DNA of 64,000 nt from NCBI GenBank assembly GCA_964270895.1, contig OZ185435.1; one strand, given 5' to 3'. Positions 1-64,000 of the stretch are shown piece after piece. This DNA comes from Podarcis filfolensis (Eukaryota). Both the position numbers and the translations under genes were made by a program. The stretch's first letter is position 1. Every line of letters begins with the position of its first letter. The notes below the pieces were generated by a model, which made no database searches, was not told where the DNA came from, and worked only from the letters and a program-made list of their open reading frames with translations.

Positions 1-1144
1 CTCAGCATCAGATGGTGGTCTGCCGCCCTCCACCAAGGGTACCACCTTCTCCACTCTCTCTAAATAAATAAATAAATACATCCCAAATTGATAACAAATC
101 CAATCCAATCCAATCACAATACAAACAGATAAGACCAAATTACATTCCAAATTAAAGAACATTTCAGAGGGGCTTCCCACGTTCTGGATGTCTGGAGAAA
201 TTGTCTCACACATTCTCCCCCCCCCCCCCCCCGCTTTCTTCGCTGTTGTTATGCCCATTTCCAAATTCCGATCTTAACCTCTCAAAATATCTTCAGTCGC
301 CGGTGCATATCACCTCTCGCATTAAAGAAATCCATATGTCCATTCGCCTGCCGGAACACAGTTTAAGTCATGTTGTTGTCCATCAATAAGAATTCTCAGC
401 GCTGCCTTCCTCCCAAATCTGGGCTGTTGTACAAGTCTGCTTCATTTACAGGTTAATGACGCCGTAAGCTCTCAAGTTGTTTAACAAGCTGTTATTCCAA
501 CTTTTTTGTAGCCCATTTCCTGGGCTGACCTTGTGGATGGGGTCCACACCAGTTTTACCCATGATAATGTTTGGGGCTATTCTTTTTAGTCATGTAGTCT
601 GCTGCTGGGTCCCTGTTTGGAAGTGGAACCTAAGGAAACAGTATCAGTGGGAGCATCACTTCCTCACTGGTACGACAGCTGTTCCCCATAGTGCCCTACT
701 TTGGAGGACATAACCTGATTTGGATGCACAGCTCAAAAGAGTTCAAAGAAACAAGTGCAAATGCATCCCCATCATCTTAAAAAAAGCAGTGGTTTCAAAG
801 CACTGTACTGTCTTCACTTGTCAGTACAGAGCGGAGCATCAGAGTTAGCAATGCAGACATTAATGGAGATGCAATAGTTTATCTTGAATTTACTGCTGGA
901 ATAAATGATCGCTGCTTGAAAGTGAGCCGACGCTGCAGTTATCCAGAGGTTATGTTCTTTAATCTAAAGATACTGCAATTGCAACACAAAATGCTGGCAG
1001 CCAGATGCTTTTGGAAGTCAAGTATAATTACTATATTACATGATATTAAATGATGTTTGAGAGGAAATAAAATTAATTTGAGAGGAAATGTGAACCCCAC
1101 TGCAAAAGCATTTTAAAAATACAAATAAAAATTCCCCAAACCAT

Positions 1145-1378
1145 AAAGGTCAAGGCACCCCTGACCGTTAGGTCCAGTCGCGGACGACTCTGGGGTTGCG
1201 GCACTCATCTTGCTTTACTGGCCAAGGGAGCCGGCGTACAGCTTCCGGGTCATGTGGCCAGCATGACTAAACCGCTTCTGACGAACCAGAGCAGCACACG
1301 GAAATGCCATTTACCTTCCCACCGGAGCGGTACTGATCGGCAAGCCCTAGGCTCTGTGGTTTAACCCACAGCGCCACC
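1145..1378 (-). mobile_element. Sauria (Squam1) SINE with internal deletion
   Basis: Reverse complement of 34451-34800 lacking ~100 bp of the 5' body. Confidence 0.88.
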
Positions 1379-1436
1379 ATAGAGAGCACCTGACAAGCTA
1401 AGACCTATGTCCACCAAAAACCAACGTCTTACTTAA

Positions 1437-2085
1437 CAGGGTTGGCCCAGATATTTTGGTGCCTGAGGCAAACTACAAAATTGCAGCCTCCGCCCATCCT
1501 CCCTGCCAGTGAAGAAGGGCTGGGTGAAACAGGAGCAAAGGGGGAATAATATCTGGCTGGTCTGCCTAAAATCATTTTGTGATAAATTTAGCTATTTCTT
1601 CTCTGGTTTTGCATATCAAACAAACAGACGTAATCTGAGATTTGGGGCTATAAAGAATATGAATCTTTTTTAAATTCAATTGACATAGTGTTTATTGTTA
1701 TAAGGAAGGGGTTGGATAGTTTATACAGCAGAGTTTATTCTAAAAACATTTTTGTGTGCAGCAACTGTTCACTGCAAATGGCTGTGTCCCTGAGAAGCAG
1801 CCTCTGGCTGTGGAAACAAAAGACAGTTAAATCAAGAGAAGTTGCTTCACAAATTATTTTTGTTGATTGTCGACTGCAGCAATAAAACTGCTATCACAAC
1901 TTGCCAAAGCTCAGCAGATGTGGTTTCAAACTGGATGTCGAGATTCCTGTGGGGTTGGACTAGATGACTCTGGGGTCCCCCAACTCTACAACTCTATGAT
2001 TCTATGTGATATACATTGGGATCTGCGGCGCCCCATGGATCCTGCCGCCTGAGGTGGCCAACTCACTTTGCCTCATGGCCCTGCG
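1437..2085. mobile_element. Possible PIF/Harbinger-type non-autonomous element (contains a CR1 tail at ~1940-2005)
   Basis: Ends resemble AGGGTTGGCCC..GGTGCCTGAGGC and GCCGCCTGAGG..GGCCCTG, with TTAA-like flanks. Confidence 0.4.
1553..1849 (+). repeat. Unclassified interspersed repeat, copy A
   Basis: Collinear with 45003-45311, including exact 27-, 17-, 16- and 15-nt blocks. Confidence 0.8.
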
Positions 2086-2118
2086 CCTTAATAAATTGTG
2101 CCAGCCCTAAACATTCCT

Positions 2119-2253
2119 GGATAGCTCTTTGGTTAGATTTAACACCAAGGTGGCAGGTTCAATCCCTATGTGTGCCAGCTGCATATTCCTGCATTGCAGG
2201 GGATTGGACTAGATGACCCACAGGATCCCTTCCAACTTGACAGTTCTATAATT
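2119..2253 (+). mobile_element. tRNA-related SINE with CR1-like tail
   Basis: A box TAGCTCTTTGGTTAGA, B box GGTTCAATCCC, same CR1 tail as at 44160. Confidence 0.65.
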
Positions 2254-2499
2254 CCACCAAGGCTGCCCAATCAGGGCGACACCTCTCGCACAGGTAAAGT
2301 TTTGCAGGACGGTTTGACCTGCCTGTACAAAAAAATTTTTTTCCTTCCAGTAGCACCTTAAAGACCAACTAAGTTAGTTCTTGGTGTGAGCTTTCGTGTG
2401 CATGCACACTTCTTCAGATACTTCTTCAGACCTGCCTGTGTCGCTGATGGGCCAGGCCCAGGGCCAAGATTCCAACGTTAAGCAGGGGGAGGAGCCAGA

Positions 2500-3100
2500 A
2501 GGGGAGGTGGGCGGAGCCACCGCTCGCGGGTTCCTCTCGTATTGCCCGCTCTCCCAAACAGACTCAGCGGATAATGCAGTGGATAATTTGGGCGGGAGGA
2601 GGGGGCGGGGCCGCGCACGCGCGCAGCGCGCCGGGACAGCCTATAACTGCCGCGGGCCGACGCGTTCGACCTTTCACCCTGACGCTGACGGCTGAACGCG
2701 GAAGCGCGATGGCGGCGGCAGAAGGGCCGGCAGGCGGCAAGAGCGGCGCTTCCCCGTCGGCTGCGCACCGGAGGCTGCGGATCCTCTCGGGCCACCTGAG
2801 GAGCGGGCCGCCGGAGGCGCACCTGTCCGCTGCCCAGTGCCGAGGGCGGGCGGCGCCGGCGCCGGCTCGCCCTCAGCCGAGCACCTTCCCCAAGAGGCGG
2901 TAAGCGGGTGTGGCGGCGGGGGAAGCCTGGGCGAGGGCGGTTCCTCCCCGGTGGGACGCCAGCTGGATGGGGGCTTCCCGAGACAGGGGGCAAGGCCTCG
3001 CCCCGCCGCCCCTCGCGGAAAGGGCCCGAAGCCGGTGCTTTCCTTGCACGAAGAAGGGGACGGAGAGGCAGGAAAAAGCCGTTGCCGCTTTCCGCTATTC
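2500..3100 (+). promoter_or_regulatory. CpG island / AGPS promoter
   Basis: Sharp rise in GC and CpG content over exon 1. GC boxes (GGGCGG ~2508, GGGGCGGGG ~2602), NRF1-like GCGCACGCGCGCA ~2613, TATA-like TATAAC 2642, two TGACG half-sites ~2680-2690, strong Kozak gcgcgATGG at 2709. Confidence 0.85.
2709..2899 (+). CDS. AGPS: AGPS exon 1 (PTS2 targeting presequence)
   Basis: MAAAEGPAGG...RRLRILSGHL...QCRG...TFPKR(R). PTS2 RL-x5-HL at 2772-2798. Donor CG|gtaagc. Confidence 0.95.
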
Positions 3101-3194
3101 CTCCCTTTGGCCTCATTTAATTCAAAAAGAGAGTTTGGGGGCACACTCAAGTCTCATTTCTCCATAACATCTGAATTAGGAGGTCATATGTAGG

Positions 3195-4010
3195 CCCCCT
3201 GGGCCAGTGCCTGGGTTATTAAATCTAGCCGACAGGGTCTGATTGGTTGGGTCCAGAGCATGGTTAATGCTTCATTACTTGTGGGGGGAATGGTCTCTGA
3301 TGTCTTGAAAAAGGTAGGTGTGTGGCTTCTCCTAAAGAAACCGACTTTGAACACCTTAGACTGGAACAACTGTTGACCAGTAACAAATACACCCTTTTGG
3401 AGGATGATGGGGCAGCTGCAAGCATGTTTTGATAGCGGATTATTTAGATCTGTTCTAATCTGGGTTCAGGTCTGGCCATGGGACTGAGTTGCCCTTGCTC
3501 TTCCTAATGGATGATATTTGCAGTGGGTGGGAGAGGGTGTGTGTGAGCTTGATCCTGCTTCTTGATCTCTGGCTTTTGACACCATCGACCATGGTATCTT
3601 CCGTGACTGGCTCTAGAATGGGAATTTGAAGCACTGTGTTACAATGATTTTGGTTCTACTTCTGGGACTAAGGAGAGTGGGACTGGGAAAGTACTTTTCA
3701 GGCTTCTGTAGGTTACTTTATGAGGTGCTGCAAGGCACTATCTTAACTCCATTGTTGTTCAACACCTATATGAAGCTCCCAGGAATAATCATTAGGAGTT
3801 TGGAAACAAGGTACCAGCAGCATGCTGATGACAGACAGTTCTATTTCTCCATAACATATGACTTGGGAGAGAGCATTGGAATCTGCATGAAAGCAGTGGC
3901 GAGATGGATAAGGAAATATAAGCTGCATTTGAATCCGGGCAGGATAGAGGCACTGTGGGCGAGTGGTTCCTGTGCCTCAGAAGTTGCTATGAGCTTCAGG
4001 TGCCATGTCC
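3195..4010 (+). mobile_element. L2 (CR1/L2 clade) LINE RT fragment, degenerate
   Basis: Frameshifted motifs resembling FQSGFRPGHGTE, LLDLSAFDTIDH, QGTILTPLLFNTYM and QQHADD. Confidence 0.75.
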
Positions 4011-4057
4011 AAATAAATAACTTGTACATCTGTCCCCACTAAGGTATGAGCTCTATA

Positions 4058-4275
4058 CAGTAGTACCTCGGGTTAAGAACTTAATTCGTTCTGGAGGTCC
4101 GTTCTTAACCTGAAACTGTTCGTAACCTGAGGTACCACTTTAGCTAATGGGGCCTCCCGCTGCTACCGCCGCACAATTTCTGTTCTCATCCTGAAGCAAA
4201 ATTCTTAACCTGAGGTACTATTTATGGGTTAGCGGAGTCTGTAACCTGAAGCGTCTGTAACCCGAGGTACCACTG
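4058..4275. mobile_element. Tc1/mariner (Tigger-like) MITE family A, orientation 1
   Basis: TA TSD, TIR CAGTAGTACCTCGGGTTA / TAACCCGAGGTACCACTG. Confidence 0.9.
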
Positions 4276-4687
4276 TATAAGGATACAGCTTGTGCATTAT
4301 ACTGCAGGGAAGACACACCCACCCACCTTCCTGTGTTGGACAAGAAACACAAAAGTTGAGAGCGCAAGTCAGTTGATGGTAATGTCCAAAGTAGCTCAGA
4401 TTCAGTTTCCCCCATTTCTGTTACATGAAAGTCTTGAAGACCAAGTTAGTTAAATAGGAGTTATGGGGGGTGCGGTGGGGTAGGGTGTTTGCAGTTTATA
4501 TATCTATGAACCTGTAGAGAATAAACCTATTTATGATAGCATTTATTTAACTTAACAGTGCATTTGGTATTTCATATTTCCATTATTGAAGATTATACTA
4601 ATATGCCACTACAGTAGTGACATCTTGATTAGTAGCTGCTGCTTGGTTAGACCCTGAGTTCCTTGTTTGAATGTTTGAAATTTAGTA

Positions 4688-4947
4688 CAGTGGTACCTCG
4701 GGATGCAAACGGGATCCATTCCAGAGCCCCATTCAAATCCCGAACGGAACACAAGACGCGACAGTGCGTCTGAGCGTGCTCATGCCGCGTTTCGCCGCTT
4801 CCGCGCATGCGCGTGATGTCATTTTGAGTGTCTGCACATGTGCGAGCGGCGAAACCTGGAAGTAACGTGCTCCATTACTTCCAGGTTGCCGCAGAGCGCA
4901 ACTCGAACTCGCTCAACCCGAAGCGCATTCAACTTGAGGTATGACTG
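4688..4947. mobile_element. Tc1/mariner MITE family B (CpG-rich interior)
   Basis: TA TSD, CAGTGGTACCTC / GAGGTATGACTG termini. Confidence 0.85.
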
Positions 4948-7900
4948 TATTCCTAATTAATACTTGACAGACCACCATAGAACATGAACAGGATAGGGTA
5001 GAACAGCCAGGTAGTCAAATCTCCTGTCTGTTTAAATTTTGGTGAACAAGCAGGGCAATGTGACTGAAACACTTACCAGGTTGGGTGGTAACGCTTTCTT
5101 CTGCACAATTTTCTTAATTAAAATTGCATACAGTATGCATAAGATTTCCCCGCAAGGAAATAGTGCGTTTTTGTGGAGAGTTCATTGGGAAAGCGTTGCA
5201 AGGAGAGTGGTTTAACCTCCTTCCCACAGTGCCATGGCCCAGATCTGGATTGGATTCTCCTTCAGCTGCTATTTGCTGAAATTCTAAGCAGTGGAACGTC
5301 CACTTATGAATCTCAAGCATCTTGTCTTGTTTGGCTTTAAGAAACTTGTTGACTTTATCTAGATTTACTCTCAGTGCATAGTGCCAACAGCTCCCTCTCC
5401 CCCGATACCTTTTCTTAAGAAATCAACCTTTTATTTAGGTAAGGATATTCAGACTGTGAGGCAAATGGTTACAAAACAAAATGTGAATTACTTTGCTTGT
5501 TAAGGGAGTTTCCTGGTGGGCAGTAGGAGTTCATGGAATGTGTCAAGAGAAGAGGAGGTTCGGTGCATTGTGAAAGGACTGGGATTAAGTGAACAGAAAA
5601 ATCATACCTTAAATGACAGCATTATCATTAAGTATTATGTGTCCTGCTAAGATATTATCACATGATCTCTTTAACCCCCGCTTTGCCCCTGGCAGGAGCA
5701 GACTTGCTATCTAAAGTCCTACTGACTGTATCTTCAGTCTTGAGAAGCCAGTTGCCCAAGAGAGATCAGCCCATAGGCAAGGAGGTCATTAGCAGTTTTT
5801 GACTCCTGCTTGTTCCTATGATTAAGTAAGCTTTTGCGTGACAGCATTGATGGGCTCAGGTTGTTCCCGAGGCCGCAGGTAGTGCAGAATGTGGTGGCCC
5901 TATGCAGCTCAAGCCCAGTATACTTGCCCTGTCTTAACCTTTATATACCCAGTAGGTTACTGCATCTTGCAGGAGTGTTTCTCCTTCAAGTTCTGAAGAT
6001 CTCAAAAGCTTGCTCTACAGTAACAGAGAGCTATGCCTCTTCTGTGGAGTGGCACTCCAGTTGAAATGTGACCTGTACCTTCCTTATGCACTTTTTTTGG
6101 AAACAAAGACACTCTTGTTCCGATAAGTAATTCCAGCTAGATGAATAGGTTTCTGCGTAGGTGTCCATTCTGTATTTCTTGTAAATTCATCTTTCGTTAG
6201 TTTTGTGCTGTTCTGTTACTGTTTTTAATGTATTTGGGACATCACCTTGGGCATATGTGAAAGTGAGAAATAAGAACAACAACGTTCTTAAACACACACA
6301 CACACTTCTCTTTTTTCTGCAGCTGGAGGTTGCCTGGTGGAGAAGGAGAAACCATTGGCATTCCAAAGGGGTGGAGGGAAATTCTCAGCTGATGGATCAG
6401 TTCCAGAACCAAGCCAACCTCTGTGGGCCATTAGACTATACCTACACTGTTGACAAGCCTATACTGCTTCCTTTTACCATCCAAAGAGGAAGCAGAGGCA
6501 TATCTCTTAGTGCTGTGGTTCATAGCACTAAGATCAGTATGTCTGTTCTTAGTTCAGGAAAGCCACATCTCCATGTCTTGTCTTATGATGCCAGGCGGCA
6601 GGTGTGTGTGATTTGCTTTTCTTCTGCTTACTTCCAACAGGGACCTAAAGCAGGAAATTTCAGCAGCACCAGGCATGCCATGCAAGAGGACTGGTGTCTT
6701 CTATTATTGTGTTTCTACATTCAAATGCCTCTGTCAGGGGTCCTGCTTGCTGTAACTACTGAGGCCAAGAAAGTACCCCAGTCTCTCACTGAGACTCCAT
6801 AGCTGCTGGCAAGAAATGTATTGTTTTTTGGTCCCCCATTACACGTTAGGCAAATGAGTTGTCATGCTAAGTCATACTCAAACCCATTGGAAGAAATGGT
6901 CCTAAGATAGTCATGACAGTTTTAAGTCCACTGATTTCAGTGCATCTACTCAGATTATCACATGGTTGGCAAGATCCATTCATTGACTCCCTTAATTTAT
7001 ACTACAAGTGAAACTTCAGACTGAGTGTTTGGTATTTTTGAAAGTCCCTTGCTTTCAAAGTCTCCCTTAAAGACTTTTTTTAAAAATGGCTGTAGATTCT
7101 GTTGCAGATCTTTAAAAAAGAAAAATGTTCTGCTGCATATATTTTGTTTGGGTGATATTAGAGGTCCACTAAGTTTGGATGGGCTTGGTACTCGGTTATT
7201 GTTTCTAGTAGCCAAATTTTTGATGCTGTATGGAAGCAAAGTACATATTGTCTTAGCCGTGTAGTTTCACATTTCAAGCAACACATTCATCAGAGGATTA
7301 AAAATAGAAAACAATAAGATGAAATTTTTTCAGAGTTGGAGAATCTCTTAGCTGTTTGAAAAACTTTCTTCAGTATGTATCAAGAGCACATTTCTTACTT
7401 CAGTCATTATCAGCTACTTAATGGCATCTCCTCTTAAGCCAACTGTCAGATCATATTTCAAACGAACATTTTAACCAACAAGAGAAAGTCTCAGTAGTGA
7501 TTTATAGGAGTTTCAAAAATAATTGAAGAAAGGAGGACTTGCTGGTCTTTGCCCTAGGGATTGAACTCCAGGGTTATTGTGGGGTTTGGGCAAGGTTATG
7601 TTTTTTCCATTCCCCCGTCACTCATCCACGTTCCTCAAAGATTTCTTGGGCGCACGGCAGGGAGTAATCCTTCCAGAACATTTGGAAGTTAATTCCTGTT
7701 ATCTTTGTCCCTCGGATATAATAAGATACAGTAGCCATCACTAATCGCCACTTAATTATCTCTGCCAAGGGTCTTGACAGAGATGACTAACCAGCCATGA
7801 GGTCTCCCCGGAAGTCCTGAAACCCACTAGATTTTTGTGGTTGTAAGTTGTTTACAGTTTCAGTTTTTGATACTGTCTTAATTGTTGTAACCTGCCCTGG

Positions 7901-8734
7901 GACATTGGGGAAAAGTGTGAGATGGCAGCAAAATTATTATTATAAGCTGCAACCCAAGATAAAAGAGCACACCTAGCTACTTTAAAAGAATTGAGATTCA
8001 CGGATGCTGTGATTACTAAGAACCAGCATGGTTTCTCAAAAACAAGTCATGCAAGACGAATCTCTTTCCTTCTCTCTCTGGATAAGGCTACAAGCCTGGT
8101 GGATCATGGGAATGCTATGGATGTTGTGCACCTTGCTTTCAGTAAGGCTTTTGACAAAGTTCCCCATCATATTCTTGTAGAGAAGCTGGTAAAATGTGGG
8201 TTGGATGAGGTAACTCTTAGGTGGATTTATAGCTGGTTGACTGACCAATCCCAAAGAGTGCTCAATAACTGTTCCTTATCCTGGAAAAAAGTGACAAGCG
8301 GAGTGCCACAAGATTCTGTCCTGGGCCTGTTGTTGTTCAGCATCTTTATAAAGAACTTGGACAAAGGAATTGAGGGGATGCTCATCACATTTGCAGATGA
8401 CACCAAACTGGAGCTGCAGACAGAATCGGGATTCAATATGACCATAACAGATTGGAGAACTGGGCCCAAATTAACAAAATGAAATTCAGTAGGGACAAAT
8501 GTAAGGCTCTTCACTTAGACAGGAAGAACCAGCTGCACAAATATAAGATGGGGGACACCTGGCTTACTAGCAGTACATGTGAAAAGGATCTAGGGGTCTT
8601 AGTAGACACAAGCTTAACGTGAGTCAAAAGTATGATGCAGCAGCAAAACAAACCAAAAAAGCTAATGCTAAGCTGCATCAGCAGAAGTCTAATGTTCAGA
8701 TCAAGGGTAGTAATAATAACACTCTATTCTGCCT

Positions 8735-11095: not shown

Positions 11096-11938
11096 TGTTA
11101 AGTTGTCTGTTAAGCTATGGTGTAACATCCGCATTTATGATAGTTATCAGATTCAAGTAATGATGTGGGTGGTAGACACACCATGAAACTGTGTGTCTTT
11201 TTAAATAAAGGTGGCATCAGATTTGGAATTGTTTTCATAGGTAGATGTGCTTAGATATTTTAATTGTGTGTTAATTTATCAGTGACATGTTTCCCAACCT
11301 GGGCTCATTTGGAAGGATGAAGGCATATAAATATGATAAATAAGATAGTAATGAAAATGACTTGGATTAGCAAGGAGGAAGGAAGTTCATTCAGTCTGCT
11401 GGTGTGGGTGTTAAATGTGTTTTTGAGAATTGAGGTGTTAATTATTTTAAGCTGTGGTGTATGCATTGCATGGGTAGGTTAGAAATTCTCAGATTAATTA
11501 ATGGGAGTCAGTATTTCTCTGTCCAGAAGGCAATCCGTGATGGTTTGTTTTTGATTTAGCTGGAACTATACTGCACGTTCTCAATTTGAGGGGTGGAAAC
11601 TTCTAAAAGCTCTCCTTATTTTATTCTTGTATTTATATATTAAGCTCAAACAATTCCATAGTGTACACATCTGTCTGCCAGCGGGATGCACTTTGCTTGA
11701 ACAATGGGACTTCCCCTTCATCTCCTTCCCCTTGCAGTTCCCTTGTGTGCCTGTCCAGTCAGCTGCAGAGAGTAGAGGGAAGTTCTACATGAAACTCGAT
11801 TTTACCTATGATTTAGATTTTAAAGATTGCGGGGGGGGGGATATGAAGGTACTGAAAACTATTAACCTGCTCAAATAATTATCTAAAAATTTATGTATCT
11901 AAAATTACAGTTGTGGTAGTTAACTAGTATTGTTCTTG

Positions 11939-58542: not shown

Positions 58543-59192
58543 CTATCACAACCGATGGCGGTCATTTTAAATTCTTTGTCATATGCCCCTACAACTGCTT
58601 TACAGTAGAGATTCCATGCCTTAATTATTTCAATAAGAGTGACAAAGATTAGTCCTTTTTTTAAAAAAAAAGTGTGCTTTTTATGAAGTTGTGTGTTGAT
58701 GCAGATCTGCCTTTTTGTCTACAATATGTAGAATGGCTTTTCATATTAAGCAACAATGACAGTAGGAGTTTGACGGTAGGCCTTTTGGTATGAAGACATT
58801 AGAGACATACTTTTTTCCTAGTACTGTACTTACTTAGTCGCGTGAACTGTTAAGCCTGGGTTGTTGTTTTTTAGATAAAGGCTTTTCATATTTTCCCCTA
58901 GTGGGGCAGTGGCGCTTGCAGGCCTGCCAAAAAAAAAAAAAAAAAGCATTGGTTTTGCAGCTAGAGTATGTGTTTTCTCATATTTTGCTTAAATGTGATT
59001 TTTCGAGCCATTTTGAGGCATGTGCTTTCTAGAAGGAGTGCAATGTGCCATGTACGCAGTTTGGGTTTGGAGGTGTTGGGGCAGGAAATCACTTGGGAGT
59101 GTGGAATGTTAAAAGCAAGTGGAAAATGAGGACTCCAAGGAATGAAAGCTGGACGGGTTTGCTGATGGTTCACAGTTGGGAGGTAGAGCGTG

Positions 59193-59559
59193 CTTTTGAA
59201 TTATGGTGCTGGAGGAGACTCTTGAGAGTCCCATGGACTGCAAGAAGATCAAACCTATCCATTCTTAAGGAAATCAGCACTGAGTGCTCACTGGAAGGAC
59301 AGATCGTGAAGCTGAGGCTCCAATACTTTGGCCACCTCATGAGAAGAGAAGACTCCCTGGAAAAGACCCTGATGTTGGGAAAGATGGAGGGCACAAGGAG
59401 AAGGGGACGACAGAGGACGAGATGGTTGGACAGTGTTCTCGAAGCTACCAACATGAGTTTGACCAAACTGCAGGAGGCAGTGGAAGACAGGAGTGCCTGG
59501 CGTGCTCTGGTCCATGGGGTCATGAAGAGTCGGACACGACTAAACAACGACAACAACAA
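59193..59559 (+). mobile_element. BovB (RTE) LINE, 5'-truncated young copy
   Basis: Encodes FELWCWRRLLRVPWTARRSN...RGRQRTRWLD; (CAA)n tail; perfect 8-bp TSD AGAGCGTG at 59185-59192 and 59560-59567. Confidence 0.92.
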
Positions 59560-59658
59560 AGAGCGTGGAAAGGGATTAGCTGTCTGGGAGTGGTTTTTGG
59601 AGTCGACTAATTCTAAGTGCTTTGATCCTTCAGCTTACCTCAAATTAGTTTTCGCATG

Positions 59659-60019
59659 TGTCAGGGAATCAGGAGCAGGAGCAATGGGGAGAGAGGAATT
59701 GGAGAGCGAAGGGGAAGAATCCGAGGGCAGCGTAGGGGAGTATGACAGTGGCCCGAGAGATTCCATGAGCTTCTCCAGCGAATCAGAAGATTCCCAAAAG
59801 GGGGCGCCTATGGTCAGGGCAAGGGGGGTCCCAGGGGGGACGCACCAGAAACAAGGAGCCAGAGGGGAACCCCAAAGCAGCAGTGGAGGATCGGGACCAG
59901 TTTCCCCACCAGAGCGTAGTGGGGGGGAAGAGTCACATGTGTCAGGGCCAGCGTCTCCTCCATTGGGGAGAGAGAGTGAGTTAGGGCTGACCACGCCTCC
60001 ATCGGAGAGTGGGGGAATG
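59659..60019 (+). mobile_element. Probable partial Gypsy-type LTR interrupted by the copia element
   Basis: Begins TGTCAGGG, purine/GC-rich and unlike the AT-rich flanks, ends abruptly at the copia LTR boundary. Family assignment is by resemblance only. Confidence 0.45.
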
Positions 60020-60350
60020 TGTTAGTTTAAAGCAGAGTCCCGTGCACAGCAGAAGGATGAGGAGTACGTGCTGCATACTCTATATTGCTTTATTTAAAGT
60101 TCAAAGCGATTATATTACAGAAAGACATCTTGCCTCTGCCGGAGCAGAGAAATGCATCCTCTCTCCTCGACAGCTCGGAGAGAATCACCAAAGTGAAACT
60201 GCAAAGAACAGTGAAAAACAGGAAACCAGTGTACGACACATCCAGTCTCCCTTTCCCGTGAGAAACTCCAACAGTACAGACTGTGGAATGTAAACACCTG
60301 TCTCGTGACAAACCCTTTCGCTGCACAGTGAAGGAAAGCAGAAACCAACA
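60020..60350 (-). mobile_element. Copia 3' LTR (331 bp)
   Basis: On the - strand begins TGTTGG and ends CTAACA (imperfect inverted repeat). Directly preceded by a PPT. TATAAT-like element at ~60109-60114 and AATAAA at 60089-60094. Confidence 0.85.
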
Positions 60351-60364
60351 TCCTCCCCCTTTCT
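60351..60364 (-). other. Polypurine tract of the copia element
   Basis: Minus-strand AGAAAGGGGGAGGA abutting TGTTGG, 33 nt after the pol stop codon. Confidence 0.85.
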
Positions 60365-60397
60365 GTGAACATCACTGGGCAGCGTGTTCGTACAATA

Positions 60398-63300
60398 TCA
60401 GTACAAACCCAACTTTTGCACATAGGTACAGTGTTGATCCCTGGATACAATCTTGGACAATACATCAGCAGGAATTTCATTACCTGGCATATAGGACACC
60501 GTTACGAGTCCCTTCTGAATACATTCCCTAGCATGCTGCAACTTTAATTGCAAGTGCTTTGTGCTTTGCTTACAACCTTCAGACTTCAGCAAAGCTAAAC
60601 ATGCTTTGTTGTCCTGGTAAACCCGGATTGGACATTTGACAGGAATTTTCATATCTTTGCACAATTGTATTAACCATTCACAATCCTTAAGTGAATAAGA
60701 CAGTGCATTCAGTTCGGCTTCACAAGAACTTAAGCTAACTGTTGTTTGCTTCTTGCATGACCAATCAAACAGACCCTGATTGTACATGTAGCAAACTCCA
60801 GACGTACTTTTCTTGTCTGTAGTGTCACTTCCAAAACTTGCATCTGCAAATATCTCAAGACCACCAGACTTTCGATTGTTAAATCTCAGTCTGTAATGCA
60901 TAGTGCCTTTCAAATACCGCGCTATGCGTTTCAGAGCTTTCCAATCCTTGATACTAGGATTGTTGACTTGTCTGCTCAGCAAATTACAGCTAACAGCAAT
61001 GTCTGGTCTTGAACATCTGGCAATGAAGTTTAGCTTGCCTAGCACACTTCTGTACAATGTAGTGTCAGAAAATGCTTCTTCAGTGTCATCTATCTGATAA
61101 CCTGTTGTCATCGGTGTGTCTACAGGGTTAGCATCCATCAGATTTAGTTTGCTTAACACATCAGCAATTTTCCGTGACTGGTGTACTAGAATGATACCAT
61201 CTTGATCTCTCTCTATTTCCAGAGATAGGTAGTTGTTTACCTCACCAAGATCTTTCATGTCAAAGTGCTCTTTCAGTTGAGCTAGGGCGTTATTGTACAT
61301 TGCGACATCTTTCCAAAAGAATAATAAATCATCAACATAAAACAAACAGTACAGTTTCTTCTGCCCCTCCTCTTTGACAAATACACATGGATCAGCTTTC
61401 CCTTGCTGAAAACCTAGAGAAAACAATACTTCAGTGAGTTTTGTGTGCCAACACCGTGTACTTTGTTTGAGACCATAAAGGGATTTCTTCAGAGCACAAA
61501 CAAATCCCTGTTTTACCTGTACGCCATCAGGTGGAAGCATATAAAGTGATTCATCTAGAGATCCATACAGAAAAGCTGTATTAATATCATGGTGACTAAT
61601 GTGTAGATTTTCCTCTGCAGCTAGCTTGAGCATAAGCCTTATGCTCTCATACCTCACTGTGGGTGAGTAGGTCTCGTGATAGTCTTCACCTGGTACCTGT
61701 GCAAAACCTCTGGCTACCAATCTGGCTTTGTGTCTGACTATCTTGCCATTTTGATCTGTCTTCGCTTTGAAGACCCATTTGCTTCCAAGCAGTTTCATTC
61801 CTGGAACTACTGGAACTAGCTCCCATGTTTTGTTCCTTTCTAAGGAATCAAGTTCAGCTTTCATGGCATTTAACCATGGCTCAGCTTCCTTTGAATCCAA
61901 ACCCTGGATTTCTTGGAAACTAGAAGGTTCAAATACCTTCTTGGAGCTTTTAACAGCTGTTACTGCTACCGTAGCAAATTCATCAGCAAATCTCTTTGGA
62001 GGTCTGCCTTTTGTGGCTCTCTGTGACCTACGAATTAGCCTTAAGTCTTCAACACTCTCCTCTTCCTTCTTAGGAGAAAAACGACCTATTGTGAACAATG
62101 GTTCCTCCAATTCTTGATCAGAGCTTTCAGAGGGTCGCATAGAGGCTTTCGCACTCTTGAAATCCTCTGAATCACCCGATTCAGTTTCAGATTCAGACTC
62201 AGAACCTTCATCAGTGGGTGTGGGTTGTTGTGGCTGCTTTTGACTTTCCTCAGTCTCATCACCGTCATCAGGATAACATTGGAAAATTCCCACATTCTCC
62301 CCCCACTTTGCATTGTACTCAACACTTCTCGTGAGCTTAATTGCCTTAGAGTCAGTCATCATTATTCTGTAAGACCCTTTCTGATAACCTAGAAAGATAC
62401 CATGCAATCCACGCTTGTCTAACTTGGAATTTTGTGGTGAATGAACCCACATGTCAGAACCAAAAATTTTCATGTGTTTAATGTATGGCTTCTTGCCAAA
62501 CATCTTCTTATAGGGGGTACAACCAATCGCTGAAGATAACCTGCGATTGTAACTGTAAACAAAACACGAGAGAGATTCGGCCCAATAACTCTCTGGAAGA
62601 TTGGCATCATGCAGCAAGGTTTTTAACCCTTGAAGCAATGTCTGATTTGCCCTTTCCGCAAGTCCATTCTGCCATGGCGAGCGAGGACTAGACAAATCGT
62701 GTTGAATTCCTTTCTCAGTCAGAAAAGCTTCAAACTGCTGAGAAGTGAATTCTCCCCCGCGATCACTGAAAAGAGTCTTTATCTTCTTACCATGCACATT
62801 TTCCAACCAAGCACAGAATTCCTTGAACCTAGGAAAAGCCTCTGATTTCTGCTTGAGATTGTACACAAAAATATATCTGGAAAATGCATCAATGAGAACC
62901 ATGAAGTACCTATTGCCACCCAAAGAGGGCGCTAGTGGTCCAACCAAATCTGCATGAACAATCTGGTATGGTTCCGTAGCTTGCCTACTAGACACCTTAC
63001 CTTTCGCAGCCATTTTTACCTTGTTTGCTGCGCATGCTTTGCACTTCATGTGGTACCTGCAGGGTTTAATAGTCATACCTTCAACCAAGGCAGGCATTTT
63101 AGATACTGCCTCAAAATGCAAATGACCAAATTTTCTATGAAAATCATGAATACATTCTGCATGCAAACTTTTGTTAGAACCTGCAATGCAACAAGTGTCA
63201 TCCTGCACAACATCATCATAATACAAAACAAACAAACGATCAACATATTCAGCATGCAATACATAATCATTTTTCTTTGTGATGATGCACTTCCTGTTCT

Positions 63301-64000
63301 TGAAGGAAACGTCAATGTTCCGCTCATTCAGCTGTCCAACGCTGAGCAGATTATGTTTGGCATCTGGCACGTAAAGCACATTCTGTATCGATAAGTCCAA
63401 ACTGTGAAGAACAACAGTTCCGTAGCCTTTACTGGGAATTGTGTGGTCATCCGCCTGGTGAATCGCACCTTCCTGCGGTGTAAAAGACACAAACAGTCTC
63501 TTATCGTTGCACATGTGGTGGGTCGCCGCTGAATCAACAACGAAGAAAGATCTAGACGTCTTCTGGACCTCTGCAACCTTTGGAGTGAAGCGTGAAACCA
63601 TAGCCTTGTGCTGCGTTGTCCTTGACACCGGACCTTTGCCTTTGCCTCGGCCTTTTCCGCGCGATGAGCTTTCGCTGCGCTGCTCTGTCTTGGCCCTGGG
63701 ATATCTGCATTCCCTCTTCATATGGCCTAGACGTCCACACGAGTAGCATTTCACTGCCTTCAAAGCTTTGGCGCCATCTGGTGGTTCCACTGCACTATGG
63801 GACGACGTCTGTGAAGACTCCCCCTTGCCCATGCAGCTAGCACCCCGGCGATCTGCTTCATTTAAAATCACGGCAGTAACATAATCCACTGTTAGCTGAG
63901 CTGTTGGTTGCACAGCAATCTGGGTTGCAACAGACTCCCAACCTGAACCCAAAGATTGTAGTATCATGAAAGAATACACAGCCTCTGGAAAGTTGAGTCC
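60398..64000 (-). CDS. Ty1/copia gag-pol polyprotein, 5'-incomplete (runs off window)
   Basis: Stop-free for 1200 codons from the window edge (GLNFPEAVYSF...) to TGA at 60398. Zn knuckle CYSCGRLGHMKREC (63707-63748), protease VDSAATHHM, integrase HH-CC and D,D35E (HADLVGP, SDRGGEF, NGLAERAN), RT (LKKSLYGLKQS, YVDDLL), RNase H (ADASFG, SCEAE, QDNKA, ADVLSK). PR-IN-RT-RH order is diagnostic of copia. Confidence 0.96.
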   Translation of the reverse strand, partial: GLNFPEAVYSFMILQSLGSGWESVATQIAVQPTAQLTVDYVTAVILNEADRRGASCMGKGESSQTSSHSAVEPPDGAKALKAVKCYSCGRLGHMKRECRYPRAKTEQRSESSSRGKGRGKGKGPVSRTTQHKAMVSRFTPKVAEVQKTSRSFFVVDSAATHHMCNDKRLFVSFTPQEGAIHQADDHTIPSKGYGTVVLHSLDLSIQNVLYVPDAKHNLLSVGQLNERNIDVSFKNRKCIITKKNDYVLHAEYVDRLFVLYYDDVVQDDTCCIAGSNKSLHAECIHDFHRKFGHLHFEAVSKMPALVEGMTIKPCRYHMKCKACAANKVKMAAKGKVSSRQATEPYQIVHADLVGPLAPSLGGNRYFMVLIDAFSRYIFVYNLKQKSEAFPRFKEFCAWLENVHGKKIKTLFSDRGGEFTSQQFEAFLTEKGIQHDLSSPRSPWQNGLAERANQTLLQGLKTLLHDANLPESYWAESLSCFVYSYNRRLSSAIGCTPYKKMFGKKPYIKHMKIFGSDMWVHSPQNSKLDKRGLHGIFLGYQKGSYRIMMTDSKAIKLTRSVEYNAKWGENVGIFQCYPDDGDETEESQKQPQQPTPTDEGSESESETESGDSEDFKSAKASMRPSESSDQELEEPLFTIGRFSPKKEEESVEDLRLIRRSQRATKGRPPKRFADEFATVAVTAVKSSKKVFEPSSFQEIQGLDSKEAEPWLNAMKAELDSLERNKTWELVPVVPGMKLLGSKWVFKAKTDQNGKIVRHKARLVARGFAQVPGEDYHETYSPTVRYESIRLMLKLAAEENLHISHHDINTAFLYGSLDESLYMLPPDGVQVKQGFVCALKKSLYGLKQSTRCWHTKLTEVLFSLGFQQGKADPCVFVKEEGQKKLYCLFYVDDLLFFWKDVAMYNNALAQLKEHFDMKDLGEVNNYLSLEIERDQDGIILVHQSRKIADVLSKLNLMDANPVDTPMTTGYQIDDTEEAFSDTTLYRSVLGKLNFIARCSRPDIAVSCNLLSRQVNNPSIKDWKALKRIARYLKGTMHYRLRFNNRKSGGLEIFADASFGSDTTDKKSTSGVCYMYNQGLFDWSCKKQTTVSLSSCEAELNALSYSLKDCEWLIQLCKDMKIPVKCPIRVYQDNKACLALLKSEGCKQSTKHLQLKLQHARECIQKGLVTVSYMPGNEIPADVLSKIVSRDQHCTYVQKLGLY

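Follow-up and report, generated by a model that had tools for sequence, protein, structure and literature searches.

A Ty1/copia retrotransposon of autonomous type on a Podarcis filfolensis chromosome and its relatives

A copia-type retrotransposon has been characterized at one end of the window, i.e. the whole 64,000-nucleotide stretch of Podarcis filfolensis DNA which was analysed in this study. It is probably an autonomous Ty1/copia element on the minus strand of a lizard chromosome, of which the 3' four-fifths lie in the window, and long residence with ongoing replication accounts for it better than a recent transfer from another organism. Judged by its sequence, the element is of the autonomous Ty1/copia type, with all the catalytic motifs in place across the visible 3.98 kb except for a variant of the protease triplet. 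It is best placed in a distinct squamate-dwelling copia clade with probable recent activity in two or more families of lizards.

Organization of the Gag-Pol frame and the 3' LTR

The minus strand from 60401 to 64000 was found to carry a gag-pol frame of 1200 codons with no stop codon, the 5' end of which meets the window edge. The probability of such an open frame arising by chance is negligible (about (61/64)^1200 at 43% G+C), and the largest other ORF in the window does not exceed 326 aa. In comparison to P0001, a relative of 1338 aa, about 148 N-terminal Gag residues lie beyond the window edge. Some 1 kb of the element, comprising the Gag start, primer-binding site and 5' LTR, lies outside the window, and the length of the whole element is predicted to be about 5.1-5.3 kb. 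The positions of the various features are given in Table 1.

Table 1. Features of the copia element and their positions in the window
Feature	Window position	Strand	Residues of the frame	Basis
Gag zinc knuckle	63707-63748	-	85-98	Pfam zf-CCHC and motif position
zf-CCHC			84-99	Pfam
Aspartic protease (Pol_BBD)	63317-63544	-	153-228	Pfam, E 2e-20
Protease active-site triplet D-S-A	63527-63535	-		sequence reading
Integrase (HHCC part, DD35E core, SH3-like C-terminal part)	62312-63235	-	256-563	Pfam
gag_pre-integrs			256-327	Pfam
rve			342-442	Pfam
SH3_retrovirus			501-563	Pfam
Reverse transcriptase (RVT_2)	61106-61834	-	723-965	Pfam PF07727
RNase H domain	60446-60868	-	~1045-1185	fold and acidic residues
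gag-pol stop codon TGA	60398-60400	-		sequence reading
Polypurine tract AGAAAGGGGGAGGA (plus-strand primer site)	60351-60364	-		sequence reading
3' LTR, 331 bp, TGTTGG...CTAACA (TG..CA)	60020-60350	-		sequence reading; start by conservation
TATA-like TAATATAAT in 3' LTR	60117-60109	-		sequence match only
AATAAA in 3' LTR	60094-60089	-		sequence match only
Candidate target-site duplication (3' side only), GAATG (+) = CATTC (element strand)	60015-60019	.		five bases adjoining the LTR end

Pfam domains follow one another along the frame in the order zf-CCHC, Pol_BBD, gag_pre-integrs, rve, SH3_retrovirus and RVT_2. The Gag zinc knuckle has the spacing C-X2-C-X4-H-X4-C, counted from residue 85. In the integrase, H288/H293 together with C320/C323 form the HHCC part, and D351, D413 and E449 are the catalytic residues, the latter two being separated by 35 residues (DD35E); this region also matched the solved Ty1 integrase 7z0h with an E value of 2e-15. 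The reverse transcriptase covers positions 1-243 of the 244 positions of the RVT_2 model (E 3.8e-70) and has YVDD at residue 888. In case of RNase H, profile searches in Pfam and NCBIfam gave no match, and the domain has been assigned by its fold instead. The model of this region has a pLDDT of 87, and Foldseek aligned it to solved RNase H domains, those of RNase H1 and of retroviruses, with a probability of 1.00 and a TM-score by target of up to 0.72. The acidic residues D1053, E1094/E1096, D1130 and D1179 occupy columns which are invariant among 20 copia sequences.

The resulting Pol order of protease, integrase, reverse transcriptase and RNase H, with the integrase ahead of the reverse transcriptase, is that of Ty1/copia elements (Pseudoviridae), and an RVT_2-type reverse transcriptase with YVDD and an integrase with HHCC and DD35E are likewise of the Ty1/copia kind. 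A first-pass annotation of this DNA had described a single stop-free frame of 1200 codons with the copia domains in this order, the zinc knuckle, HHCC, D,D35E, YVDD and four RNase H acidic residues, and a polypurine tract abutting a TG..CA LTR. All of these could be located, the order being borne out by the Pfam coordinates and the RNase H fold. The anatomy thus stands, with two corrections: the LTR extends over the 331 bp listed in Table 1, and the protease triplet is DSA instead of DSG.

As expected for Ty1/copia, the polypurine tract directly abuts the LTR start TGTTGG, and this junction is conserved in four relatives. The LTR start is anchored by the conserved tract and by TGT(T/C)(A/G)G in the unlabelled contigs L003 and L001 and in the copia element of the lizard Elgaria; moreover, three of the four clade members carry GGGGGAG.A immediately 5' of the LTR start. 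The window contains one TG..CA LTR, the 3' one, as the 5' LTR falls beyond base 64000. Repeat search, blastn and tblastn detected no second LTR or further copy of the element in the window, and no further copia-like sequence was found there. Dating by LTR divergence is therefore impossible. The insertion site is without a tandem repeat, so the empty site cannot be inferred from neighbouring repeat units. A scan of the LTR for bacterial-type promoters and terminators returned nothing, and such a scan is irrelevant to a eukaryotic LTR.

The junction between the LTR and its flank lies inside the window, with a clean TG..CA terminus and BovB/RTE-type host repeats before it. This bears on the suggestion of an assembly artefact or contaminant, in which copia sequence from other DNA (parasite or food) would have been mis-joined to lizard sequence. 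Nothing specific points to such an event, which was considered only due to the cut at the window end and the occurrence of relatives in metagenome assemblies. The clean junction with adjoining host repeats and the chromosomal location of the closest labelled relative in another lizard make it exceedingly improbable.

The element may be expected to follow the standard copia cycle, in which transcription would begin in the 5' LTR (outside the window) and one Gag-Pol polyprotein would be translated and cut by its own aspartic protease. Reverse transcription would be primed at an upstream tRNA site, probably by the initiator methionine tRNA by analogy with the relative L001, where TGGTAGCAGAGG two bases past its LTR corresponds to the primer site for this tRNA. 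The plus strand would then be primed at the polypurine tract, the template would be removed by RNase H, and the DD35E integrase would insert the new copy, giving rise to a 5-bp duplication.

Protease variant and age of the copy

The protease triplet of the window copy is DSA, the usual form being DSG; the retroviral-type protease consensus is D-S/T-G-A (PMC7212762). DSG is present in the four closest relatives as well as in the sibling fragment L005, and the variant was at first considered as a disabling private mutation. This idea was dropped once the quartet DSAA had turned up in 9 of 120 full-length copia proteins whose frames are long and open, on animal-like as well as plant branches. On account of this recurrence DSA is taken as a repeatedly arising and apparently tolerated variant, and the protease carrying it may be active.

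The same residue enters into the possibility that the copy is dead. Its 5' part, within the roughly 1 kb beyond the window, might be truncated, rearranged or damaged, or the Gly-to-Ala change might disable the protease, whose triplet departs from the consensus and from the five relatives; the copy would then move only through the proteins of sibling elements, or never. The recurrence of DSAA in animal-like and plant branches speaks against a disabled protease, and every other motif is intact in 3.6 kb of stop-free sequence. We consider a dead copy unlikely.

The frame extends over 3600 bp without a stop or frameshift, and 3.7-4.9% of all possible substitutions in it would give a stop codon. 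With indels assumed to occur at 5-15% of the substitution rate, its intactness limits neutral divergence to about 0.5-1% (95% bound), a limit which is biased because the copy was chosen for being open. The CpG observed/expected ratio is 0.46 in the element vs 0.34 elsewhere in the window. Within the window the copy looks undamaged; it is therefore probably young, and it may still be mobile. The unbroken 3.6-kb frame fits the view of a young copy put forward in the first-pass annotation.

Relatives of the element and the question of transfer

Among the named relatives, the nearest is a full-length copia element of the anguid lizard Elgaria multicarinata, which has 45% identity with the window copy in Gag-protease-integrase and 60% in reverse transcriptase-RNase H. 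The two LTRs of the Elgaria element have 97.1% identity, and it is bordered on both sides by a perfect 5-bp duplication, CAACC. The tree groups these sequences as (Elgaria,(P0001, window, L003)) with an SH-aLRT support of 100 and a stem of 1.36 changes per site, so that the window copy, the Elgaria element and two unlabelled public contigs form one long-stemmed clade, placed among arthropod and nematode sequences and not among plant ones. This tree comes from a quick search, and vertebrates are poorly sampled in it because transposon proteins of vertebrates are scarce in the protein collections. Elgaria is the single labelled squamate relative available, the closest contigs L001, L003 and L005 being unlabelled.

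Fragment L005 is 96.8% identical to the window copy (dS 0.095, omega 0.175), and L003 is 79% identical (dS 1.2, omega 0.11). The differences between L005 and the window copy are mostly synonymous (omega about 0.18), and for this reason they are taken to reflect a family diversifying by replication. The sequence comparison thus points to an element family that has diversified through replication.

The first-pass annotation had considered the copy a candidate for horizontal acquisition, to be judged by an RT-RNase H tree. According to this explanation, an unrelated host, such as a vector among the arthropods or nematodes, would have passed the family on to the lacertid lineage not long before this insertion. 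Copia elements are scarce in amniotes and missing from birds and mammals (PMC4350176), as that annotation had rightly stated, and such scarcity would favour a transfer. It would also suit a transfer that, of the four closest sequences, three belong to unlabelled public assemblies, and that arthropod and nematode sequences, not plant ones, surround the clade in the tree. On the other hand, the nearest labelled relative is a squamate, with 100% clade support, and the clade has a very long private stem, RT-RNase H identity to non-squamate sequences being at most 44% among the proteins scored. Excess similarity between hosts is the hallmark of transfer. Synonymous differences from both Elgaria and P0001 are saturated, at a proportion of 0.78-0.81, and hence there is no similarity above the divergence of the hosts. 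The element and host trees gave no sign of incongruence either, in a comparison which, with one labelled member in the clade and thin vertebrate sampling, is not a strong test. Further, a 3%-diverged sibling under purifying selection implies time spent replicating as a family. A recent acquisition of this kind is quite improbable, and we give similarly little credence to the wider version in which the family, or the whole clade, reached lacertids by transfer; L003 (79% identity in DNA) and P0001 (58% in protein) would then derive from non-squamates, parasites or prey. If a transfer were true, it would be a rare case of copia moving into an amniote.

Comparison with known elements and significance

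The Elgaria multicarinata webbii copia (locus L004, within Gnomon model LOC134395383) shares its clade and domain order with the window copy. The two resemble each other at the polypurine tract and LTR start, and the Elgaria element has TG..CA termini on its LTRs and a duplication of 5 bp around it. It differs in having an LTR of 412 bp vs 331 bp in the window copy, one stop and one frameshift, and a DSG protease. The 1338-aa polyprotein of P0001/L001 (ENA assembly ERZ27260045) has 58-59% identity to the window copy over the whole frame and is similar in its single gag-pol ORF and polypurine tract, with an LTR starting with TGTTAG. P0001/L001 has 67% identity to P0004, a derivative lacking the reverse transcriptase, whereas the window copy has only 47%. 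Drosophila copia, yeast Ty1 and tobacco Tnt1 (Pseudoviridae) share the order of protease, integrase, reverse transcriptase and RNase H and the RVT_2-type reverse transcriptase. A zinc-knuckle Gag, a short TG..CA 3' LTR and an integrase matching that of Ty1 (7z0h) further connect the window element to these classical references. Arthropod and plant copia members show only about 30-34% identity to the window element, which sits in a separate long-stemmed clade.

The copia element of the corn snake, compared by its description, is another squamate Ty1/copia with gag, integrase, reverse transcriptase and RNase H. This young element is present in 85 copies with evidence of current activity (PMC11948899, PMC4657000), and two colour mutants as well as insertions in OCA2 and CLCN2 have been described for it (PMC4657000, PMC11948899). 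It measures 5,832 bp vs the 5.1-5.3 kb predicted here, resides in a snake and not in a lacertid, and has evidence of current activity, whereas the window copy is a candidate for mobility. No dedicated description of copia in lacertids was found in the literature.

The window element is best explained as an ordinary young member of a copia lineage that is resident and recently active in lizards, and not as evidence of transfer. That squamates harbour young, active copia was already known from the corn snake (PMC11948899, PMC4657000); our study mainly contributes one more annotated member of the family and the definition of a squamate copia clade. If its 5' end is intact, the window copy would be a candidate source of reverse transcriptase and RNase H for the copia derivatives lacking a reverse transcriptase, and it could yield insertion polymorphisms usable as markers. 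Copia has been inferred to be part of the ancestral vertebrate mobilome and to have been kept in reptiles (PMC4350176). As birds and mammals are without it, living amniote copies can help to show why certain lineages have retained the superfamily.

Domain organisation and the 3' end of the element

The copia element of the window was found to carry 1200 stop-free codons on the minus strand, and its frame is still open at the window end. Integrase lies ahead of reverse transcriptase (RT), which is the copia arrangement, and the window integrase matched the solved Ty1 integrase 7z0h (E 2e-15). For the final 180 residues the profile libraries gave no name; folded using an alignment of 20 copia sequences, they reached a mean pLDDT of 87, and Foldseek matched the model to RNase H1 and retroviral RNase H domains (probability 1.00, TM-score by target up to 0.72). 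The RNase H acidic residues D1053, E1094/E1096, D1130 and D1179 occupy invariant columns across the 20 copia sequences. The zinc knuckle, the HHCC residues (H288, H293, C320 and C323), the integrase triad (D351-D413-35-E449) and YVDD (residue 888) are also in place. The single open frame, copia domain order and preserved motifs described in the first-pass annotation were thus confirmed by the Pfam coordinates, the RNase H fold and the motif positions, and the element is a real autonomous-type copia.

Positions of features in the window and in related contigs
Feature	Position	Strand	Remarks
Gag-Pol frame	60401-64000	minus	TGA at 60398-60400
Zinc knuckle	residues 84-99	minus	Pfam
Pol_BBD, copia-type protease barrel	residues 153-228	minus	Pfam
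GAG-pre-integrase, zinc-binding part	residues 256-327	minus	Pfam
Integrase core	residues 342-442	minus	Pfam
SH3-like integrase tail	residues 501-563	minus	Pfam
RVT_2 reverse transcriptase, complete	residues 723-965	minus	Pfam, E 4e-70
Protease Ala codon (GCG)	63527-63529	minus
Polypurine run AGAAAGGGGGAGGA	60364-60351	minus	33 bases past stop; TGTTGG directly after
3' LTR	60020-60350	minus	331 bp; starts TGTTGG, ends CTAACA at 60020
Candidate target-site duplication, one side	60015-60019		CATTC (GAATG on plus); adjoins LTR end
LINE 3' end	59200-59560	plus	~460 bp from copia insertion point
A run, 17 bases	58930-58946
326-aa open frame	59045-60025	plus	acidic, serine-rich segment 59690-60019
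RVT_1 fragment, 163-aa ORF	7991-8482	plus	E 1.5e-13
CpG-richer block	1-5000		48% G+C
L001 (P0001)	1-4931		LTR ~62-479; bases 1-141 recur exactly at 4791-4931
L002 (P0004)	298-3153		845-aa ORF
L004 (Elgaria), CM068556.1	6896-11857		LTRs 6901-7312 and 11436-11852
L005 (P0241)	280-1080 of 1-1080		96.8% identical to window copy, bar 29-bp deletion and divergent patch exactly at protease active site

The abutment of the polypurine tract on a TG..CA LTR, also claimed earlier, holds on direct reading and by conservation: the junction is kept in all four clade members, with the core GGGGGAG.ATGTT identical in the window copy and in the related contigs L003 and L001. This conservation fixes the LTR boundaries. 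A putative TATA-like TAATATAAT and a putative AATAAA were recognised in the LTR as sequence matches only.

The neighbouring LINE 3' end is one which we take to be BovB/RTE-like from its translated tail (...AWRALVHGV.KSRTRL...). The 326-aa frame passes this tail and a purine-rich, T-poor stretch into the copia LTR; Pfam gave no match for it, and base skew (GC skew +0.25 to +0.32) most likely produced it by chance. Elsewhere in the window, the RVT_1 fragment belongs to a non-LTR retrotransposon and is the only other RT remnant among ORFs of at least 140 aa. The first 5 kb, having a CpG observed/expected ratio of 0.58 vs 0.22-0.43 in the subsequent 5-kb blocks, could correspond to a CpG island or a promoter.

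Relatives of the window copy and the protease variant

Proteins of 660-2100 aa were scored in a 5.8-billion-protein collection, and only two close relatives were found among them. P0001 (ENA assembly ERZ27260045) is 58-59% identical to the window frame over its full length, and P0004 (Logan run ERR14657248), a Gag-PR-IN protein without RT, is 47% identical; the remaining scored proteins, spider, ant and plant among them, showed 30-34% identity. The RT-RNase H query alone added P0122 on contig L003 (78%; Logan run ERR14047923) and P0121, a protein predicted by Gnomon in the anguid lizard Elgaria multicarinata webbii, while a protease-region query found P0241 on contig L005 (Logan run ERR14657708).

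In L001 (k141_54570), the exact end repeat indicates that the assembler collapsed two LTRs into a 4790-bp unit; TGGTAGCAGAGG, two bases after the LTR, is an initiator methionine tRNA primer site. In L002 the ORF is followed by about 35 last RNase H codons, the polypurine tract and the LTR start, which marks it as having arisen by internal deletion from a P0001-like element; its protein is 67% identical to P0001. The runs of L002 and L005 share an accession series. The identity of L005 to the window copy DNA extends over 780 aligned bases and its 5' part is divergent, with only ~75% identity at bases 220-280 and no alignment of the first 219 bases to the window, ~130 of them beyond the window's end. 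This mosaic suggests either that subfamilies have recombined or that the contig is chimeric.

The Elgaria locus holds a whole copia, aligning to window residues 2-1200; identity is 45% across Gag-PR-IN and 60% across RT-RNase H. It is damaged by one integrase stop and a single frameshift lying between the integrase and RT regions; its 412-bp LTRs are 97.1% alike, and the target duplication CAACC is perfect on both flanks. The NCBI model LOC134395383 joins this copia RT to LINE endonuclease and RT domains, and is therefore a transposon chimera, not a gene.

The protease triplet of the window copy is D-S-A. D-S-G is found in P0001, P0004, the Elgaria copy and L005, and the retroviral-type consensus is D-S/T-G-A (PMC7212762). 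D-S-A as a disabling change was considered and dropped, since DSAA occurs at the aligned position in nine of the 120 full-length copia polyproteins retrieved (P0020, P0041, P0049, P0077, P0088, P0091, P0104, P0108 and P0117). These fall on animal-like and plant branches, one being a protein of pigeon pea (Cajanus cajan) and another a sequence from the animal branch, which shows that the variant arose more than once. Judged from these alignments, D-S-A is a recurrent, apparently tolerated natural variant and does not by itself indicate damage.

Age and origin

Alignment to the 1338-aa P0001 has shown that ~148 N-terminal Gag residues are absent from the window frame; these, together with the primer site and 5' LTR, lie right of base 64000. 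The element can hence be called intact, as first annotated, for its visible four-fifths only. Within the window, no second LTR and no other copia-like sequence was found. A stop would arise from 3.7-4.9% of all single substitutions that the frame can undergo, and with an assumed indel rate 5-15% that of substitutions, there is only a 5% chance that a frame this long remains open past ~0.5-1% neutral divergence. Squamate neutral rates are roughly of the order of 1e-9 per site per year, at which the copy would be at most a few million years old; as the copy was selected for its open frame, this limit is soft. The CpG observed/expected ratio of the element (0.46 vs 0.34 in the remainder of the window) is mildly in line with youth. 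The claim of a recent insertion thus fits both the unbroken frame and the CpG ratio, within a soft age bound, and the copy is probably young.

The RT-RNase H tree proposed in the first-pass annotation was built from 69 sequences (IQ-TREE, quick search, LG+C20) and, with vertebrates thinly sampled, places the window copy beside the squamate Elgaria element, which branches outside P0001, the window copy and L003 (SH-aLRT 100; stem 1.36 changes per site). This clade is nested in a well-supported group that also contains sequences from arthropods and nematodes and is separate from the plant groups. Omega is 0.175 against L005 (dS 0.095) and 0.11 against L003 (dS 1.2); against P0001 (pS 0.81) and Elgaria (pS 0.78) synonymous sites are saturated and omega is not computable. 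The low omega between copies indicates that the lineages diverged by functional replication rather than by post-insertion decay. Horizontal transfer into the lizard lineage, raised at first reading, is very improbable, and none of its customary signs was seen: the only labelled clade member is also squamate, the window copy shows no excess similarity to any host and its family has at least one sublineage, 3% diverged, though the test is weak, as three close relatives come from unlabelled hosts, their accessions yielded nothing in the literature and vertebrate transposon proteins are sparse in the collections. The window copy belongs to a squamate-resident copia clade.

Copia elements are absent from birds and mammals, in agreement with the first annotation, present in reptiles and inferred to have been part of the mobilome of the ancestral vertebrate (PMC4350176). 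The corn snake copia (5,832 bp), first described as matching Copia-6 of Anolis in Repbase (PMC4657000), is present in 85 near-identical copies, accounts for two colour mutations that arose independently and is regarded as possibly active (PMC11948899). Since squamate copia, including a possibly active one, is already on record, a young and possibly mobile lizard copia is of a known kind.
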